A DNA stretch of 64,000 nucleotides, from contig NW_026860905.1 in NCBI RefSeq assembly GCF_026571515.1, positions 1 to 64,000 on the forward strand, written 5' to 3'. The notes below the pieces were generated by a model. It saw only the letters and a program-made list of their open reading frames with translations, did not search any database and was not told the origin of the DNA. Source of the DNA: Ruditapes philippinarum. Lineage: Eukaryota. A program made the translations under genes and the position numbers. Positions 199 through 47,172 of this stretch are shown piece after piece (the first letter of the stretch is position 1; every line of letters begins with the position of its first letter).

Positions 199-748
199 AG
201 TGCTTATTTTGTTTTTATTTTGTCTGTATGCATATTGTATCACTTAAGTTGATATGAATTAGTGTTAATACTCATTTATAGCCAATTATAGGTTGGGCTA
301 TTCTGTTGCATTTGATGTATTTTTGGTCTTAGGAATGTTGAGTTGTTTTGTTAAGCGTTTCATTTTTTACAAAAAATGTACAATGCAATATTTATGCTGA
401 ATATTTCTTGAAATAAATAGCTTTATTTTTTACAGGAGTTTATTTCTACAGGGAAAACATTTATTCTCAAGATATCTACAATAACTTATTTTGTATTGAA
501 ATTATTTGTCAAAAAGTGAAGTTTACATAGGAAACGGTTGAGAATCATAAATATATGTAAATGTGCAATATATAATGTGCAATGTTTTTTTGGGGTTTTT
601 TTGTTTTGTTTTTTAAATATTATAAAATGCAATATTGTTTTTAAAAGTCGGTAGTGTATTTTACAATGCAGTTCTCTCATTGTTTCCCGTTTTTTAATAC
701 AAGTCATTTTATAGCAAAATATATCCCAGATTCAAATATATGTTAAAC

Positions 749-783
749 CACGGATTTATATTACAGTGTAATATAAATCCGTG
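749..783. mobile_element. 35-bp palindromic DNA-transposon remnant (P-element-type excision footprint) with 7-bp TSD
   Basis: CACGGATTTATATTACA-G-TGTAATATAAATCCGTG (17+1+17 perfect inverted repeat) flanked by the direct repeat GTTAAAC (742-748, 784-790). Confidence 0.8.
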
Positions 784-2761
784 GTTAAACACGTAAAATT
801 GACATTTTCTAGTGCAGGATAATCTGCATTTTTACATCCTGTTTACACCCCTGGAAGACAGGTCGCGTGCTTTACATGACGTCATACCTGCGCGCCTTTT
901 ATGAATGAACTGCATTCTTAAAATGACATTTTTGCCGTTATCACGTTGTTAATGCATATGTTACTGTAAGAAAAAGATCTAAATGAAAATGTTAAGTTTT
1001 CATAATTTATTTTCGAAAAATAATAAACATGTAATATGCAAGAAAAATAATCAAACACCGGTTGTCGTCACACACATACAGGAATACATGTATCTAGCTT
1101 TAGGGTAACTATTTAGCGGAATATCAGCAGAGCCTTGTTACCGCCTCGAGCTAGATATTCCAGTGTGTACCGGTAGCCGGTGTTAGATCCTTATAATATA
1201 CAATAAGATATTTGACACGAAAATGCAAATGAGCATATATAATAATGAATAAACTTACTGTTGACACTAGTTTAATAGCTATTTTTTATGAATATTGATG
1301 AAATAGAGGAATTGGTCTGTTTCAAAATAATGTTAAATTTATTCAAGAATTTTTTTTGTATTATGTATACGTTATAAATGTATAATGTACAGATTAAATA
1401 AAGATAAGTAAACAGTGTTGTATTATTTAGAATTTCATTTAAAATTTGACAGGAAAATGTAATTATATCCTGCTAAAAGGAAGTAATATGACTGTACTGT
1501 ATTGTCGTCTGCCAGCATGACCTTATCAGTTGATCATTCCTAGGAATGGAAATCCGATTAACAAAATGTTGCACAGCAAGAGTTTTTTTTTTACAGATTC
1601 CTTACAATACACCAGCGCAGGGCTCTAGCTAGAGCAACATTTGTAAAAGACGGATGTTGTACTATCTACACATTAAAACTGCGCATCATAAGCCATGCAC
1701 ATAACGTATTTGAGAAATTATACGGCCATCGTGTTTGTTTAGCAGTATTATATATGGAGCTTACATTTAGTTGTAAGCTGTATGCCTCCATCTTTATATC
1801 ATTTAAAACCTTGAAAACATTTCGACTGTTTCAAAGTTTCTGATAAATGACTGCTGAATTTTTTTTTATACAGCTCTACATGTATATCTGCTGCAAAAAT
1901 CATTGTCTGAATTAAAAAAATAATACAAATGTACGTCTAAAATGCTTGTGTGAAATAAAAAAGGTAGTTAATGAAATTGCCTAAAAGTGAATGGCGCATG
2001 ATCGGAATCATTCTCAACGGATAAAACCCTTCTCAAAATAGCAGAATCATATTTTGATTCTGTTTACTTAGATATACAATAATTATGTGTGTTAAATGAC
2101 AGAGACATTCTATTTCTCTTTTCTTCGTTCTAGGCTTAATAAGTGTCCATCTGTCCTTTCAAGCACTGCGAGTACGGACCCCGGAAATGTCACCATTTAT
2201 GTCCTTAAATGTTATTATTATATCTACTAAAAGGTGACCTATAAATTTTGAATTCAGTAATTCACTGAACGATACTAAATATGTATGCAAGTCGATTATT
2301 TCGTACTAAGATTTAGCTTTATACCCTTTAATATAAATAATCAAATACTGTCATTGACGAAATATCCGTCCGGATAGCAGTTTAATATTTGGAACTGAAT
2401 CAAATATTGACCTAGCTTTGAGTAATAAATTGCAGTTAAGAAAAGCTGTCAGCGAATTTATGAGATTTTAATAATTTCCCACATGTTATTTAACTTCTAG
2501 AGGTCATGTCAGGCAGACGACAATGAAAATTGCTTTCCGACCGAAAGTAAAAGGGAAATAACCTCTAATGACATAATTGAATTACTAGGTCAGCAAATAA
2601 CAATGAATTATATAAACACCTCGGTCATAATTGGATTTTTTTTTATTATGAATAGAATGAAATAGATTTTGTATTTACTCCAGTTAAAAGGTTTCCAAAT
2701 TACATTCACTGAGTTCAAGTTAAATTCTTATTTACATGTACGTAAAGTGATCTGTGCACAT

Positions 2762-36233: not shown

Positions 36234-37246
36234 AAATATACTTGGATTAAAACACATTGACAAAGGCGATAACATTATTCACCTGTTTAATTCTTACCAA
36301 TCACCTGCTGGACTTGTATAAAAGACTGGTCCAGTTTTTGATCTGGAACAGTCCATTTCAAGTTTGAATGATTTGATATCAGTATTGAAATAAAATACAC
36401 AAAATTAGTTACCATCAGCATAGAACCTAGCTAGACTGCATAAATCTGCGCATGCGCATTTTCTAGACTCAATGGCAAAATTGTTCCTATGTTAAATATA
36501 TCATGAAAAATTTATATTGTAGAAATATGGAGGAAGATCGGTGACGTGGGCAGACAGAGGTACTCTCCCCTTTGTGGATGCGACGTTAATGGAGATACAG
36601 AGATTGTCAAATATCGGTTAGCTGCTCATTTTATTATTTTGTCATGTCATATTTAATCATTTTGATATGTACAATGTTTGCTCATAAAGAAATATATAAT
36701 AACATTTAAAGTTTATCGCAAAAATAATTTCAATTTGCATATATTGTAATAACTAATTTCTAAAAGTGTACTAAAATAAATAAAAAAAAAAGAATTTCAT
36801 ACCATATATAGGTGATGATTGAAAAGCTGTTTGCCTAAACCGCTTTTAACACACTCCATACGATTTGTTGTTTTTATGGTTGTTGTTATTTTTGTTATTT
36901 TTATTACGTTGTTGTTGCTTTTGTTTACAAAATGTAGCACAAAGTCATAGGTTCTAAGTATGATTGCCTTACTATTTCAGCTGAAATGTCTATCCCGCAC
37001 ACAAACGAGAACGAGGCAATATTAAGAGGTTTTCGTATTCCAAAAGATTCAATCATACAGGCTAATATCTATTCTTCACACATGGACCCATTATACTGGG
37101 ATGAGCCCAGGCAGTTTAATCCGGAGAGATTTTTACAGGACGGAAAGATTAAGAAGAATAAAGCGTTCATGCCATTCAGTATAGGTAAATATCTTGTCAG
37201 CATTAAAATCAGCAAAATTACATGAAGATCGCAGACTAGGTTTGAT

Positions 37247-37277
37247 CACGGATTTATATATGTAATATAAATCCATG
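37247..37277. mobile_element. 31-bp palindromic transposon footprint with 7-bp TSD, copy 2
   Basis: CACGGATTTATATA+TGTAATATAAATCCATG flanked by GTTTGAT on both sides. Confidence 0.8.
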
Positions 37278-39440
37278 GTTTGATGAGAGATAATGGAAAG
37301 GTCTCAGAACATAATAACAATTATAAAATTATATTAACTGTTAATAACAGTGATTATCTTCTTTTGAACATTGCCTCTTTTTGTATTGAAAGTGTTGAAT
37401 GTCATAAAATGTAAGATTTTATGTTGATAAAGATAAAAAATATATATAGTAGCAATGTCTTTTTTTCTTTAAATTGTTGATCAATTTTCATTAAACAAGT
37501 TAGTATGACAGACGGGTGGCATAAATATGTAGCCAAGCAGCTTACAGATAACAGTAATCTGTTTTTCAGATTTGTTTAAATACAAAACTATCTAAAGTTA
37601 ACAGCATACAGCTCTTAGCTATCTAAGGTTCATTCAGTCAGATAAAAGTAAATGCTTATCTTCAATGTTATTGGAATCTTGTTTTCCAGGTCCTCGGATG
37701 TGCCTTGGAGAAAATTTGGCAAAGATGGAGATTTTTCTGATATTTACAAATTTTCTACAAAGATTCACGTTTAAAAGAGAGAACGATGACATCCGCCATT
37801 CTTTTGACTGTATTTTTGAACAGCTGACATCAGCACCACTACCTTACAAAACAAGGCCGATAAGCCGGGTATAAGATGGTCAGACAGAAGTCATGTTGTC
37901 AATTGTGTAAAATGTCGTATCTTATTTTTAGTGTAATTATTTTGTTCTGTCCATGTTGTATCACTTATTGCTGGATATTTGAATCTGCTTAAAGTAGTGC
38001 CAGCGGGAATGAGACATGTCGACTCATTACATTTATATATATGTATGTATTTTATATTCAATTCTCATTAAAAACATCGTTCATTTAAATGTTTACAAAT
38101 GTCTATAGACTGCAAATTTTCCATGACAAATCAATCTTCTGGTGTAAAAGTTACATAATAAATGAATCACGCACACTATGTCTTGTTCTGTTGAACTCTA
38201 TTTCATCTCATCTCGTGCAGCTTTGGCTCCATATTAACGAAGAATTAAGGATCAGAATCAAGATCAGGATCAAAGTTCAAAATTAAAAAATTCTCTAGTG
38301 TATATTCCCATAGCTTCAATTTTCCTTTACTTACCTTATCGAAGCGCTAACAACGACAGTGTGGATTTGGTTGCACATCTTTGCAGTTTTACACACTGAG
38401 CTCTTAACATTGTCCATAATGGTTTTGAATTTTATTTTCAAAGTTCCTAGTTACTTAAGCAGTTGTTGAAATTTGAAGTTGGAAAAATGTTGGTAGTAAA
38501 ATAAATTTACAAATTCGTAGCATGACTTTTATTTATTAATGGTGAATATTGACATACAGAAAACGGAACCTCTAAAGAATGCCCAAAACGACAAAAAAAT
38601 AAAATGTTGCAGCGAGCCTGTTCAATGATGGTACTGGAAAGTGCACGTTACCGTTCACGCCCCCCCCCCCAGCACCGGCTTAATAGAATTAAACATTTAA
38701 ATACGAAAATGGTGAAAGTTAGAATTCACGTGTTCATTGGGCGGTTATCATGGAACCTTCAAAGCGACACTTTCATGCCATTTCATGAAAGTCGGCGTGT
38801 GGCCCCCAAGTAAAAGAAAGTGTGTGCTCCGAAGGAAAAAAACAATGGGCGGAACTAAATAAAATGGAATTTTGAAAAGGGATCAGAGGTTATAAAGCCT
38901 GCTAGAGAGTCTAATTCTTGTGCAAAGTGGTTTATTTTATCATTGCTTGAAATCAAAAATAAGTATAGGGTTAATATCAATGTTGGGTGCCAAAAACAAG
39001 AGTATGTACATGCAGTATCGATATCATAAGAATTGGTGCTCAAAATGATCGCTCAATTAATAGTTTCTAACGGTACACACGTTGTGTCAATTATTGTATT
39101 ACCACAGGTAGGGAATTTAAAATTTGCAGCAGCGCGGTATACCTCTGTCTCTCTACGGTGGCACAGAGGTGACATGTGAATGTTTTTATTCATCTCGTCC
39201 GCCCGACATAGTATCTCGTCCGCCCGACATAGTATCTCGGGCGCACGAGATAAATAAAAGCATACACATGTCACCTCTGTGCAGTGATTTAATTTAATTT
39301 AATTAAGCCGTGCGCACGAGTTATTTGTCGTGCGCACGAATTACTATGTCGTATAATACATTTATAAAAATTCAAGTGAATACTTTCATTTGATTTGAAG
39401 ACAGCTGTTGCAAGTAAAATTTAATTCAAATATCTTAGTT

Positions 39441-45041: not shown

Positions 45042-47172
45042 ATGGCATTTTTATCATTAACCACAGTTCTAGTTGTCTTAGTTTCCATGGATACACAATC
45101 ATTCGCTATGCACATCGATGTCGAATTTGGCAACTTTGAAGGTAACTTTTTCACCTTATTTAAAGCCACCTATCATAAATCTTTACCTATTCCTTCAAAA
45201 TCCAATTCTTAAATTGAGATAGTATTAAAAGTTTATTAAGATGTTCAAAAATCAAATTTATAAATGAAGATACAGTGTAGTATTGTAAATCTATTAAGTC
45301 GAAGCTCATAGAAAACATTCTAAGACAGACCGCTGAAATAAAATATGTGTAATTCGTTTTATTTAATTAACATATGGTTAATTTTGACAACATGAATCAT
45401 TATATTTTTCAGCATTGACTTGCTACACTTGCCCAGATAAACACAACAACAAACAATGCAACAAGTGGGCTCCTGATATCCCTTGTCCATTTAGTAAGTG
45501 TACAAGTTTTCAAAAAAGTAAAAAAGACATAAAAATCAACAGCTAAAACAAAAGCCAAAAAAAAAAAAAAGAGAGAAAAATAAACAAGAAAGAGAAGATT
45601 GATGATAACCATAGGCACATGTTTCGCGGGTTGAGACCCTGTCAAATTTATCTGAATATAACGATTTTAATGTTAAGTATATACGTTCTTTTAATACCCC
45701 CATTTTTTACGTGTAAGAATGGTCCAAGTGCCTATGATACTAACATACCAAACAGTTAATCTGCAGCCTGTCCTGCCACACAGATTCTGTTGTTTCTCAA
45801 TTTTAGTATCTTGATAATGCTTGTTAATTATCATAACTAGTGGATTTGTTTTAAAGTCTATCATACAAACCAGCCGTTGAAGGAACGGACATTTTTTTAA
45901 ATTCAACCACGGATTTATATTACTAATATAAATCCGTGATTCAACTAATTAGCTATAGACTGATCTAATTAAAGTAAACGACATCAATAACTTATAACAT
46001 TTACTTTGTAGGACACACAGTATGCACGACTGTACATCGTTTCAACAACAGCACAGGACAAAGCTTACAGGTGGACAAAATGTGTGCCATGCCAGAACAT
46101 TGTACCAGTGATGACGTGGGTTGCAGGGCTACCGACATAGAAGGAGAAATCGTAAGTTTAAATTATATTGAATTCTAGTTTAATTATAAACTAAACAATA
46201 AGAATTGATCAAATTATAGGCGGAACTTAATGTAAGACTTTTTATGAACTCTGTGTTATTATAAGAACTCTTGTCATTATTGTATTGTATTGTATATATG
46301 CCATGATCACAATATGCCATGACTCTATTATGTCAGTTCGTGAATAAATATATCATCAGCAATTTGAATAAGAAAAAATAATAATAACAATATCAATCAT
46401 TTTAATAAATTTGAACATAACTAGTTGAGACGAAGCAATGCATTTTGCTGAAATTTGCTGATCTTGTGAGTAAACATGTTTATATTTTATGTATCTAAAT
46501 ATAGAGAATACTATCCTAGTGTCTGATATTACAAAGTTTTTCAGACAAGGCTAAAAAGAGCGAATCTCTGCAGAGTCCTTCATTTTTTTTCGTGCCGAGT
46601 CTGATAAATTTTATTTTATCAGACACTTGTTTGGTATTTTATTCATCATGTTTGCATTTTTCACAAGCGTTTCTTCCTTTAAATTTCAAACGTGTTCATG
46701 CCGCGCGCAGTGAAATGCGAAGGATAATATTTTTAAGAAATAGTTTCTAATGTGTTTGTCAAATATAAGAGAGATTTTAAAATCCAACACTGTATTTGAT
46801 TCAAAGTTTAATATTTTCAAACTAGTTGGAGATAAGATATTCCATTCTCTTCATTTTATTTCAATATGCATTGATGAGGTATCTGATAAAGCTGAAGGTG
46901 ACTGATAAAACTGTATTTATCAAGCATGGACTTTATCAACAGAAATCATTGTAATGATATGATAAAAAATAATATTTTATTAAATCTTTTATTTACAGGA
47001 ATGCATTTCCTGCTGTACAGTATCCTATTGTAACGTCGCCGTACCGTATAACGTTACTACGTCACAGACGCTATCCATTTCTCAGACTGGTTCAACAGGA
47101 AGTCACGTGTCGATTATAGACTGGTTAATGCTTGTTGCTACATTTTCGTTGACAACTTTAGGCAACATCTGA
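45042..47172 (+). CDS. Ly6/uPAR three-finger protein, LYPD6/LYPD6B-like, GPI-anchored (164 aa), copy A
   Basis: Exons 45042-45141, 45413-45493, 46012-46151, 46999-47172. Signal peptide, LTCYTC...12 Cys...SCCTVSYCN, Ser/Thr spacer, hydrophobic C-terminal GPI signal. Upstream non-coding exon ends at GAAG|GTAAGC 44586; TATA ~44465. Confidence 0.9.
45908..45938. mobile_element. 31-bp palindromic transposon footprint with 7-bp TSD, copy 3
   Basis: CACGGATTTATATTAC+TAATATAAATCCGTG flanked by ATTCAAC. The paralogous intron carries a single ATTCAAC (62118-62124). Confidence 0.88.

Follow-up and report, generated by a model that had tools for sequence, protein, structure and literature searches.

A 17-nt stagger between the two strand cuts is given as a distinguishing feature of P-element transposition in passages of PMC7776569, which cite Beall & Rio 1997. 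Excision junctions of the Drosophila P{wa} element hold the 8-bp target-site duplication (TSD) and up to 17 nt of each transposon end, blunt 17 + 17 joins among them (PMC2895639, Tables 1-3). Other P{wa} junctions show 1-3-nt, (AT)/(TA) microhomologies and AT-rich templated insertions, and the junctions are ascribed to end joining of 17-nt non-complementary 3' tails (PMC2895639). In the literature searched, direct mapping of the 17-nt staggered cut was found only for the Drosophila P element. Here we describe three palindromic sites in 64,000 nt of DNA from the clam Ruditapes philippinarum (assembly GCF_026571515.1, contig NW_026860905.1, positions 1 to 64,000; this whole stretch is called the window). 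Each site consists of pieces of one transposon end placed head to head, with perfect 7-bp TSDs outside them. Very probably, the three sites are germline excision footprints, or scars, of a DNA transposon of the P superfamily.

The clam elements and their scars share several features with the Drosophila P element: a transposase whose RNase H fold is split by a GTP-binding insertion domain, CA...TG tips, a terminal inverted repeat (TIR) of ~30 bp, scars made of the TSD plus up to 17 nt per end, and blunt, short-microhomology and AT-rich templated-filler joins. They differ in having a 7-bp instead of an 8-bp TSD, in a ceiling of 18 nt at one end type, and in that a search of the one full-length clam copy for a THAP domain gave none. 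Also, the P scars of Drosophila are laboratory products, whereas those of the clam are natural, shared germline alleles, about a thousand of them, in a mollusc host. Galileo, another member of the P superfamily, has a 7-bp TSD with the consensus GTAGTAC (PMC2775673). The clam elements resemble the Galileo/1360 (Hoppel) clade in the 7-bp TSD, a GT...AC-like target, the P-type transposase and abundant non-autonomous derivatives; the TIRs of Galileo, however, are very long and internally repetitive, compared with 30 bp here. The literature searched yielded no description of 17-nt Galileo scars across a genome. Beyond the insects, passages of PMC10983969 describe a transposase homologous to that of P, vertebrate THAP9 with zebrafish Pdre2, which excises its own elements. 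The same passages give 13-bp TIRs and an 8-bp TSD for Pdre2, against 30 bp and 7 bp here, and larger flanking deletions upon excision by zfTHAP9; they do not report a cut position for zfTHAP9, whereas here the natural scars give one. Up to 17-18 nt per end are retained in the clam scars. This distinguishes them from the footprints of Tc1/mariner and Stowaway elements, which keep 2-3 nt per end as a result of a 2-3-nt stagger. What the two kinds of footprint have in common is that the TSD and a few terminal bases remain after end joining (PMC4561436).

The three sites are made up as follows (strand is given for the arms of site 1).

742-748: left TSD of site 1, GTTAAAC; this heptamer is single in the paralogue C3583
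749-765, plus strand: left arm of site 1, the 17 terminal nt (CACGG...TTACA), identical to the first 17 nt of the TIR (30 bp) in the 2-kb family described below
766: junction base G of site 1, filler or nt 18 of a G-type end, which are indistinguishable
767-783, minus strand: right arm of site 1, the 17 terminal nt of the opposite end, inverted
784-790: right TSD of site 1, GTTAAAC
37240-37246: left TSD of site 2, GTTTGAT
37247-37277: site 2 scar, 31 bp, with 13 exact nt of the left end, an A and 17 nt of the right end
37278-37284: right TSD of site 2, GTTTGAT
45901-45907: left TSD of site 3, ATTCAAC
45908-45938: site 3 scar, 31 bp, with 16 nt of the left end directly abutting 15 nt of the right end
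45939-45945: right TSD of site 3, ATTCAAC

The core of site 1 (749-783) is thus 35 bp long and reads 17 nt + G + 17 nt, and the right arm of site 2 carries a single G>A substitution (CCATG). An earlier note on this DNA had described the three sites with their arms and TSDs, and all of these were borne out; its ~14 + 17 for site 2 is equivalent to our 13 exact nt + A + 17. A search with the 13-nt tip gave six matches in the window, all within the three sites, and found neither a solo end nor a long element there.

Site 1 is an insertion relative to the ancestral state. A paralogue of the surrounding region (89% identical, on contig C3583) gives a clean alignment through the site but is without exactly 42 bp, that is, the 35-bp core and one GTTAAAC, and represents the empty site; a second copy, on C1990 (96% identical), carries the same scar. 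For sites 2 and 3, exact-pattern searches of the assembly with up to 3 mismatches gave no empty counterpart. Contigs from four other samples belonging to four studies contain the site 3 scar together with both its flanks; this scar is therefore a shared germline allele. No empty allele, full-element allele or joint across site 3 was seen in those four samples. The very high read depth at site 3 and the discordant loose ends over its palindrome are due to the many other loci.

Sites of the window type occur throughout the genome beyond chance. Paired tips, which the earlier note had suggested looking for, were searched for in the whole assembly (1.41 Gb, 15,874 contigs): an exact 13-mer followed within 0-12 nt by the inverted 13-mer was found at 721 sites, compared with 0 for the reversed control. 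Fixing the 8-nt tips and allowing a core of up to 42 bp gave ~1,370 matches per strand (control, 2 and 1); the sites with exact 8-nt tips are put at about 1,400-1,600 in all. Some of these raw matches (~30-45%) are passive copies of two scars that lie inside other repeats and have identical flanks. The first has a 29-bp core with the TSD TACATAT and recurs with the same 12-nt flanks on both sides; the second has a 37-bp core with an ATTTTAA-type TSD, and its flanks are identical wherever both are listed. Since the bulk cores share their flanks, the bulk of the 29-bp and 37-bp cores are single scars that were later amplified within other repeats. By hand tally, ~41 of the first ~57 sites listed by the 8-nt-tip search, or about 70%, are independent scars. 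Allowing for the passive copies, the independent scars of the window's end type number about a thousand genome-wide, and a second scar type, which belongs to the unequal-ended family described below, adds about a hundred.

On average, then, the genome holds roughly one scar per Mb, and three in 64 kb are ~30-45 times this figure. The window's three scars are a local cluster and no guide to the overall density. The earlier note had taken them to hint at a very high genome-wide number. Neighbouring scars are also present on other contigs, with two lying 3.5 kb apart on C356 and two 22 kb apart on C622. A further cluster, in G000:C446:1-14000 (of which L023 covers 1-2300), has three scars in 14 kb (at about 1716, 11702 and 13889) together with two element ends (at about 406 and 679), and may be a trail of local hopping. 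The overall excess of clustering is weak (~6 pairs against 3 expected, in a small sample). P elements are known to hop locally (PMC7776569), so that the scar clusters may reasonably be read as trails of local hopping.

Parent elements were found by reading 30 nt beyond the 17-mer, which in about one case in four is followed by RGGATCGGACACT... Five pairs of such extended ends bound elements of 1,959-2,886 bp. Their 30-bp TIR, CACGGATTTATATTACA|RGGATCGGACACT, begins with CACGG and ends with CCGTG, giving CA...TG tips. All five elements are flanked by a perfect 7-bp TSD, different in each, and the copies are 84-98% identical to one another. Candidate loci of this 2-kb family number at least 637, many of them 97-98% identical to the query copy; the family is young and non-autonomous. 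Neither its elements nor those of the 3.5-kb family (see below) contain an open reading frame of note, and no tblastx match was obtained between 2-kb copies and P-like loci. In a genome search, the full 28-nt TIR was essentially confined to the 2-kb family; three candidates for another family bearing it with different subterminal sequence turned out to be mutated 2-kb copies.

A few scars pair the usual 17-nt arm with an arm starting with CACGGAC, and these pointed to a second, unequal-ended family with elements of 3.5 kb. One of its ends is CACGGACTTTAATTGACA|AGGATCGGACAC, where 18 nt precede the conserved block; the other is of the usual type with one base changed, ...TGTAATTTAAATCCGTG. Over ~340 subterminal bp, the 3.5-kb and 2-kb families are 68-72% identical. 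The internal DNA of the 3.5-kb copy proved to be 90-95% identical to a P-like locus, and a full-length element was delimited.

L058:200-3680: copy of the 3.5-kb family, 3,481 bp, TSD GTTCAAC
C4936:146543-156451: full-length element, 9,909 bp, with the same two tips as the 3.5-kb family and a perfect 7-bp TSD, GTACATC

The 3.5-kb family derives by deletion from the 9.9-kb element. The right end of the 9.9-kb element agrees with the G-type end of the 2-kb family at 16 of the 17 tip bases and at the next 15 (GGGATCGGACACTCC). Two open frames of 355 and 556 aa lie on the same strand of the element. The 556-aa frame (L025:1177-2844) matched three Pfam families, all above the cut-off: PF21787, TNP-like RNaseH_N (3e-27), PF21788, the GTP-binding insertion domain (1.2e-19), and PF21789, RNaseH_C (1e-5). 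Its sole match in the PDB was the Drosophila P transposase (6P5A/6PE2, E 4.6e-15), and in the comparison with 6P5A the SDxPHLIK and NQDxxE motifs were aligned. The presence of this P-type transposase in the 9.9-kb element places the parent lineage in the P superfamily. The window's TIR variant is tied to a P-type transposase through TIR and subterminal homology, not through an autonomous copy of its own.

One could instead suppose that a non-P transposase with a long stagger made the scars, and that their tips resemble the 9.9-kb element by coincidence or through capture. In fact, only non-autonomous elements were found to carry the exact TIR variant of the window, and the other 30-plus P-like loci examined are without the window TIR. 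We consider this explanation very improbable, given that an element with a P transposase has a matching right end, identical to the scar family well beyond the tip, as well as a 7-bp TSD, and is connected to the 2-kb family by the subterminal homology of its 3.5-kb derivative. Moreover, we know of no other eukaryotic superfamily that leaves ~17 nt per end.

The P-like loci that lack the TIR do not qualify as parents; they represent other P lineages or domesticated genes. Thirty PF21787 loci and four extended ones (L024-L057) were tried as parents and lacked both the TIR tips and the inner GGATCGGACAC block, and the boundaries of three young P-like families showed other termini. A near-match in L056, CACGGATTTACAGGATA, lies in apparent coding sequence with no partner end and was treated as chance. 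Two of the P-like loci, L054 (G000:C9423) and L055 (G000:C9393), have open frames of 858 aa and 830 aa, respectively, and no flanking TIRs were detectable within ~2.5-3 kb of the frame in either direction; the two loci may belong to other P lineages or be domesticated genes of THAP9 type. The 9.9-kb element itself carries, near its left end, a 312-aa frame antisense to the transposase (L059:325-1263, minus strand, G000:C4936). This frame has no Pfam match, but a piece of it, LQPIYFKILN.ASESDNNTNE, is retained in the 3.5-kb derivative (L058:1194-1331, minus strand), and it may represent a second element-borne gene. A GC-rich palindrome, CGCGCGCATGCGCG, is conserved ~50-65 bp inside the end of both the 3.5-kb and the 2-kb elements (e.g. 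L058:~250-275); it resembles an NRF1-type promoter motif in elements that are otherwise AT-rich.

The lengths of the arms have a sharp upper limit. Of the 78 arms counted by hand at 39 independent sites of the 8-nt-tip search, 30 were exactly 17 nt long and none was longer. About two thirds of the sites had at least one 17-nt arm, so that the mode coincides with the maximum. The identity of the parent TIRs, by comparison, runs to nt 30, that is, 13 matching bases beyond nt 17. Requiring R at nt 18 on both sides yielded 23 sites of an 18 + 18 type, but all of them then continue with A/T (AT, ATAT, ATAAT etc.) and never with the parent GG. When nt 18-20 of the parent (RGG) were required on one side, with up to 30 nt to the other tip, only two sites were found in 1.4 Gb, one with a 30-nt arm and the other reading 17 + AGG + 15. 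The former, G000:C6724:138717-138764, is alone among the short elements found in keeping an entire TIR arm (30 nt), which is joined to a 14-nt arm; this exception to the ceiling looks like a one-end-only cut or an internal deletion.

At the CACGGAC-type end the limit is one base further in. Arms of this type mostly end in ...GACA (18 nt), some being shorter, and wherever ...GACAAGG is found, a full-length end follows. In the unequal-ended family, the scars contain 18 nt of one end, filler and 17 nt of the other, and are not palindromic. The structure of the scars therefore follows the element ends and not palindromy, which rules out explanations that depend on palindromy. The earlier note had expected a hard ceiling of 17 nt for the arms; this holds at the usual end type, but 18 nt is the limit at the CACGGAC-type end and there are two exceptions genome-wide. 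As read from the two end types, the cut would lie at ...ACA^RGGATCGG in both. The fly P TIR presumably has A|AGG at nt 17-20, as do the elements here.

These lengths bear on the possibility that the sites arose by internal deletion of an element down to its tips, through template switching in synthesis-dependent strand annealing, replication slippage or hairpin processing, with no defined staggered cut. Internally deleted copies are common among Drosophila P elements, and the C6724 element looks like the outcome of such an event. However, the breakpoints of such deletions are expected anywhere. Since the TIR identity reaches nt 30, deletions independent of a cut should often leave arms of 18-30 nt, but the arms are capped at nt 17 or 18, their mode lies exactly at the maximum, and the two longer-armed short elements stand against 721 sites with the exact 13-nt core and a spacer of up to 12 nt. 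The ceiling thus rules out internal deletion as the general cause, and although C6724 may be a single case of it, we regard it as an improbable origin of the window sites. We infer that the maximum arm length is set by where the 5' strand is cut.

The junctions between the arms fall into classes. Some are blunt (17 + 17) and others are of the form 17 + N + 17, while 17 + 13, 17 + 10 and 16 + 13 fit a 1-nt overlap and a 22-bp core fits a 4-nt overlap, ATAT. Fillers include ATAAA, TTAATATAA and duplicated pieces of the arms. These classes match the published P excision junctions of Drosophila. Perfect 7-bp TSDs surround all the long elements examined, those of 3.5 and 9.9 kb included, and most scars; almost all of the independent scars have a 7-bp TSD. 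Among 42 TSDs tallied by hand, position 1 was R in 86%, position 2 T in 81%, position 6 A in 67% and position 7 Y in 60%, suggesting a loose GTnnnAC-like target that resembles Galileo's.

Such palindromes could also be taken for miniature inverted-repeat transposable elements of 29-38 bp that are themselves mobile, each site being a primary insertion. Every site does have its own 7-bp TSD, the empty-site comparison is compatible with an insertion of any size, and simple cores (17 + 17, 17 + AT + 17, 17 + ATAT + 17) recur at several loci with different flanks. These recurrent cores, however, are the simplest outcomes of end joining; otherwise the cores are very heterogeneous in arm lengths and filler, and the abundant 29-mer and 37-mer have identical flanks and are passive copies. 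Nor is there any sign that the ends mobilise alone: a set of seven copies with an 18-nt end and unrelated DNA was considered as a family mobilised through 17/18-nt ends, but all seven have one common flank and are passive. In addition, ~30 bp of DNA would hardly be able to place two ends in one synaptic complex. We attach a very low probability to mobile palindromes of this kind.

Two sites have perfect 7-bp TSDs and full 17-nt arms around unrelated DNA (L022:501-2612, G000:C35; L021:501-1075, G000:C191). The L022 insert is a 5'-truncated non-LTR (non-long-terminal-repeat) retrotransposon (RVT_1 4e-21, profile positions 71-194) with a (TTATC)n tail and AT-rich filler, and that of L021 is a 541-bp piece ending in AATAAA...(TTTGAC)n. 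A long interspersed nuclear element (LINE) may have inserted into a scar; alternatively, the break made by the transposase may have taken up retroelement cDNA.

For the window sites we propose the following sequence of events. An element, most likely a ~2-kb non-autonomous copy with the TIR given above, would have inserted with duplication of 7 bp of target and would later have been excised by a P-type transposase supplied in trans. This enzyme would make a staggered cut, cleaving the 3' strand at the tip and the 5' strand after 17 nt of the TIR, immediately ahead of the conserved RGGATCGG block. Because of the stagger, each flank would be left with a copy of the TSD and a 17-nt 3' single-stranded transposon tail. 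The two tails would have the same sequence and be non-complementary, and end joining would unite them bluntly (17 + 17), after trimming at 1-4-nt microhomologies, or with a short AT-rich templated filler. The product would be a near-palindrome of 22-45 bp flanked by intact TSDs.

The earlier note had proposed germline excision scars of a P-like element, and the parent elements, the P-type transposase, the ceiling and the empty site at site 1 support this proposal. It had also named uniform length, arms often longer than 17 nt and a non-P parent as signs to the contrary. Instead, the junctions differ in arms and filler, two short elements in 1.4 Gb have an arm of at least 20 nt, and the 9.9-kb element with the same tips encodes a P-type transposase. 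That this particular transposase lineage made the cuts is probable.

Several points weigh against excision by such an enzyme. The arm lengths were tallied by hand over the ~40-55 sites that head the listing, and the cut is placed from its repaired products. No locus segregating the full element and the scar was found, and excision was not directly observed. In the assembly, no autonomous element was found whose two ends both carry the exact TIR variant of the window, and the transposase is present in only one near-intact copy, the next being 68% identical and the others decayed. The left inner TIR of the 9.9-kb element is degenerate, and its coding region is split into the 355-aa and 556-aa frames. 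Finally, the earlier note had expected longer elements that encode a THAP domain together with a P transposase. The transposase was found but a THAP domain was not detected: the upstream 355-aa frame is without a Pfam match, and a C2CH or AVPTIF-like motif is absent from all open frames of the full-length copy, whose gene is split and possibly has unrecognised exons.

Adjoining site 1, at 839-1130 of the window, is a ~290-bp repeat with 1,772 first-look candidates genome-wide. It forms arrays in both orientations in several contigs, e.g. C13510, C10934 and C1947.

The mechanism considered here is already known, and what is new is the host lineage. The earlier note had concluded that the 17-nt staggered cut is conserved far outside insects. 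The peak of the scar arms at 17 nt agrees with this, with the qualification that the ceiling is 18 nt at one end type and that the cut is read from scars. A wider reading, which we put forward tentatively and at slightly less than even chances, is that the long stagger of P-type transposases is ancestral and predates the split between arthropods and molluscs. On the same reading, the cut would be positioned by the conserved inner block, ...ACA^RGGATCGG, rather than at a set distance from the tip, since the unequal ends of one family leave 18 and 17 nt; and the thousand or so scars, including the events with a 5'-truncated LINE exactly between the arms, would form a germline library of end joining on non-complementary 3' tails. 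The same figure, recorded about a thousand times in the germline of a distant animal lineage, argues that the cut belongs to the whole P/THAP9 superfamily. With a young 2-kb non-autonomous family and a candidate transposase, this idea can be tested in a mollusc. The scars are at the same time a natural record of the repair of non-complementary 3' tails in the germline of a mollusc, by blunt joining, microhomology and templated filler. Relics of 22-45 bp are missed by repeat finders, yet each marks the past visit of a transposon, and they deserve to be recognised as a class.

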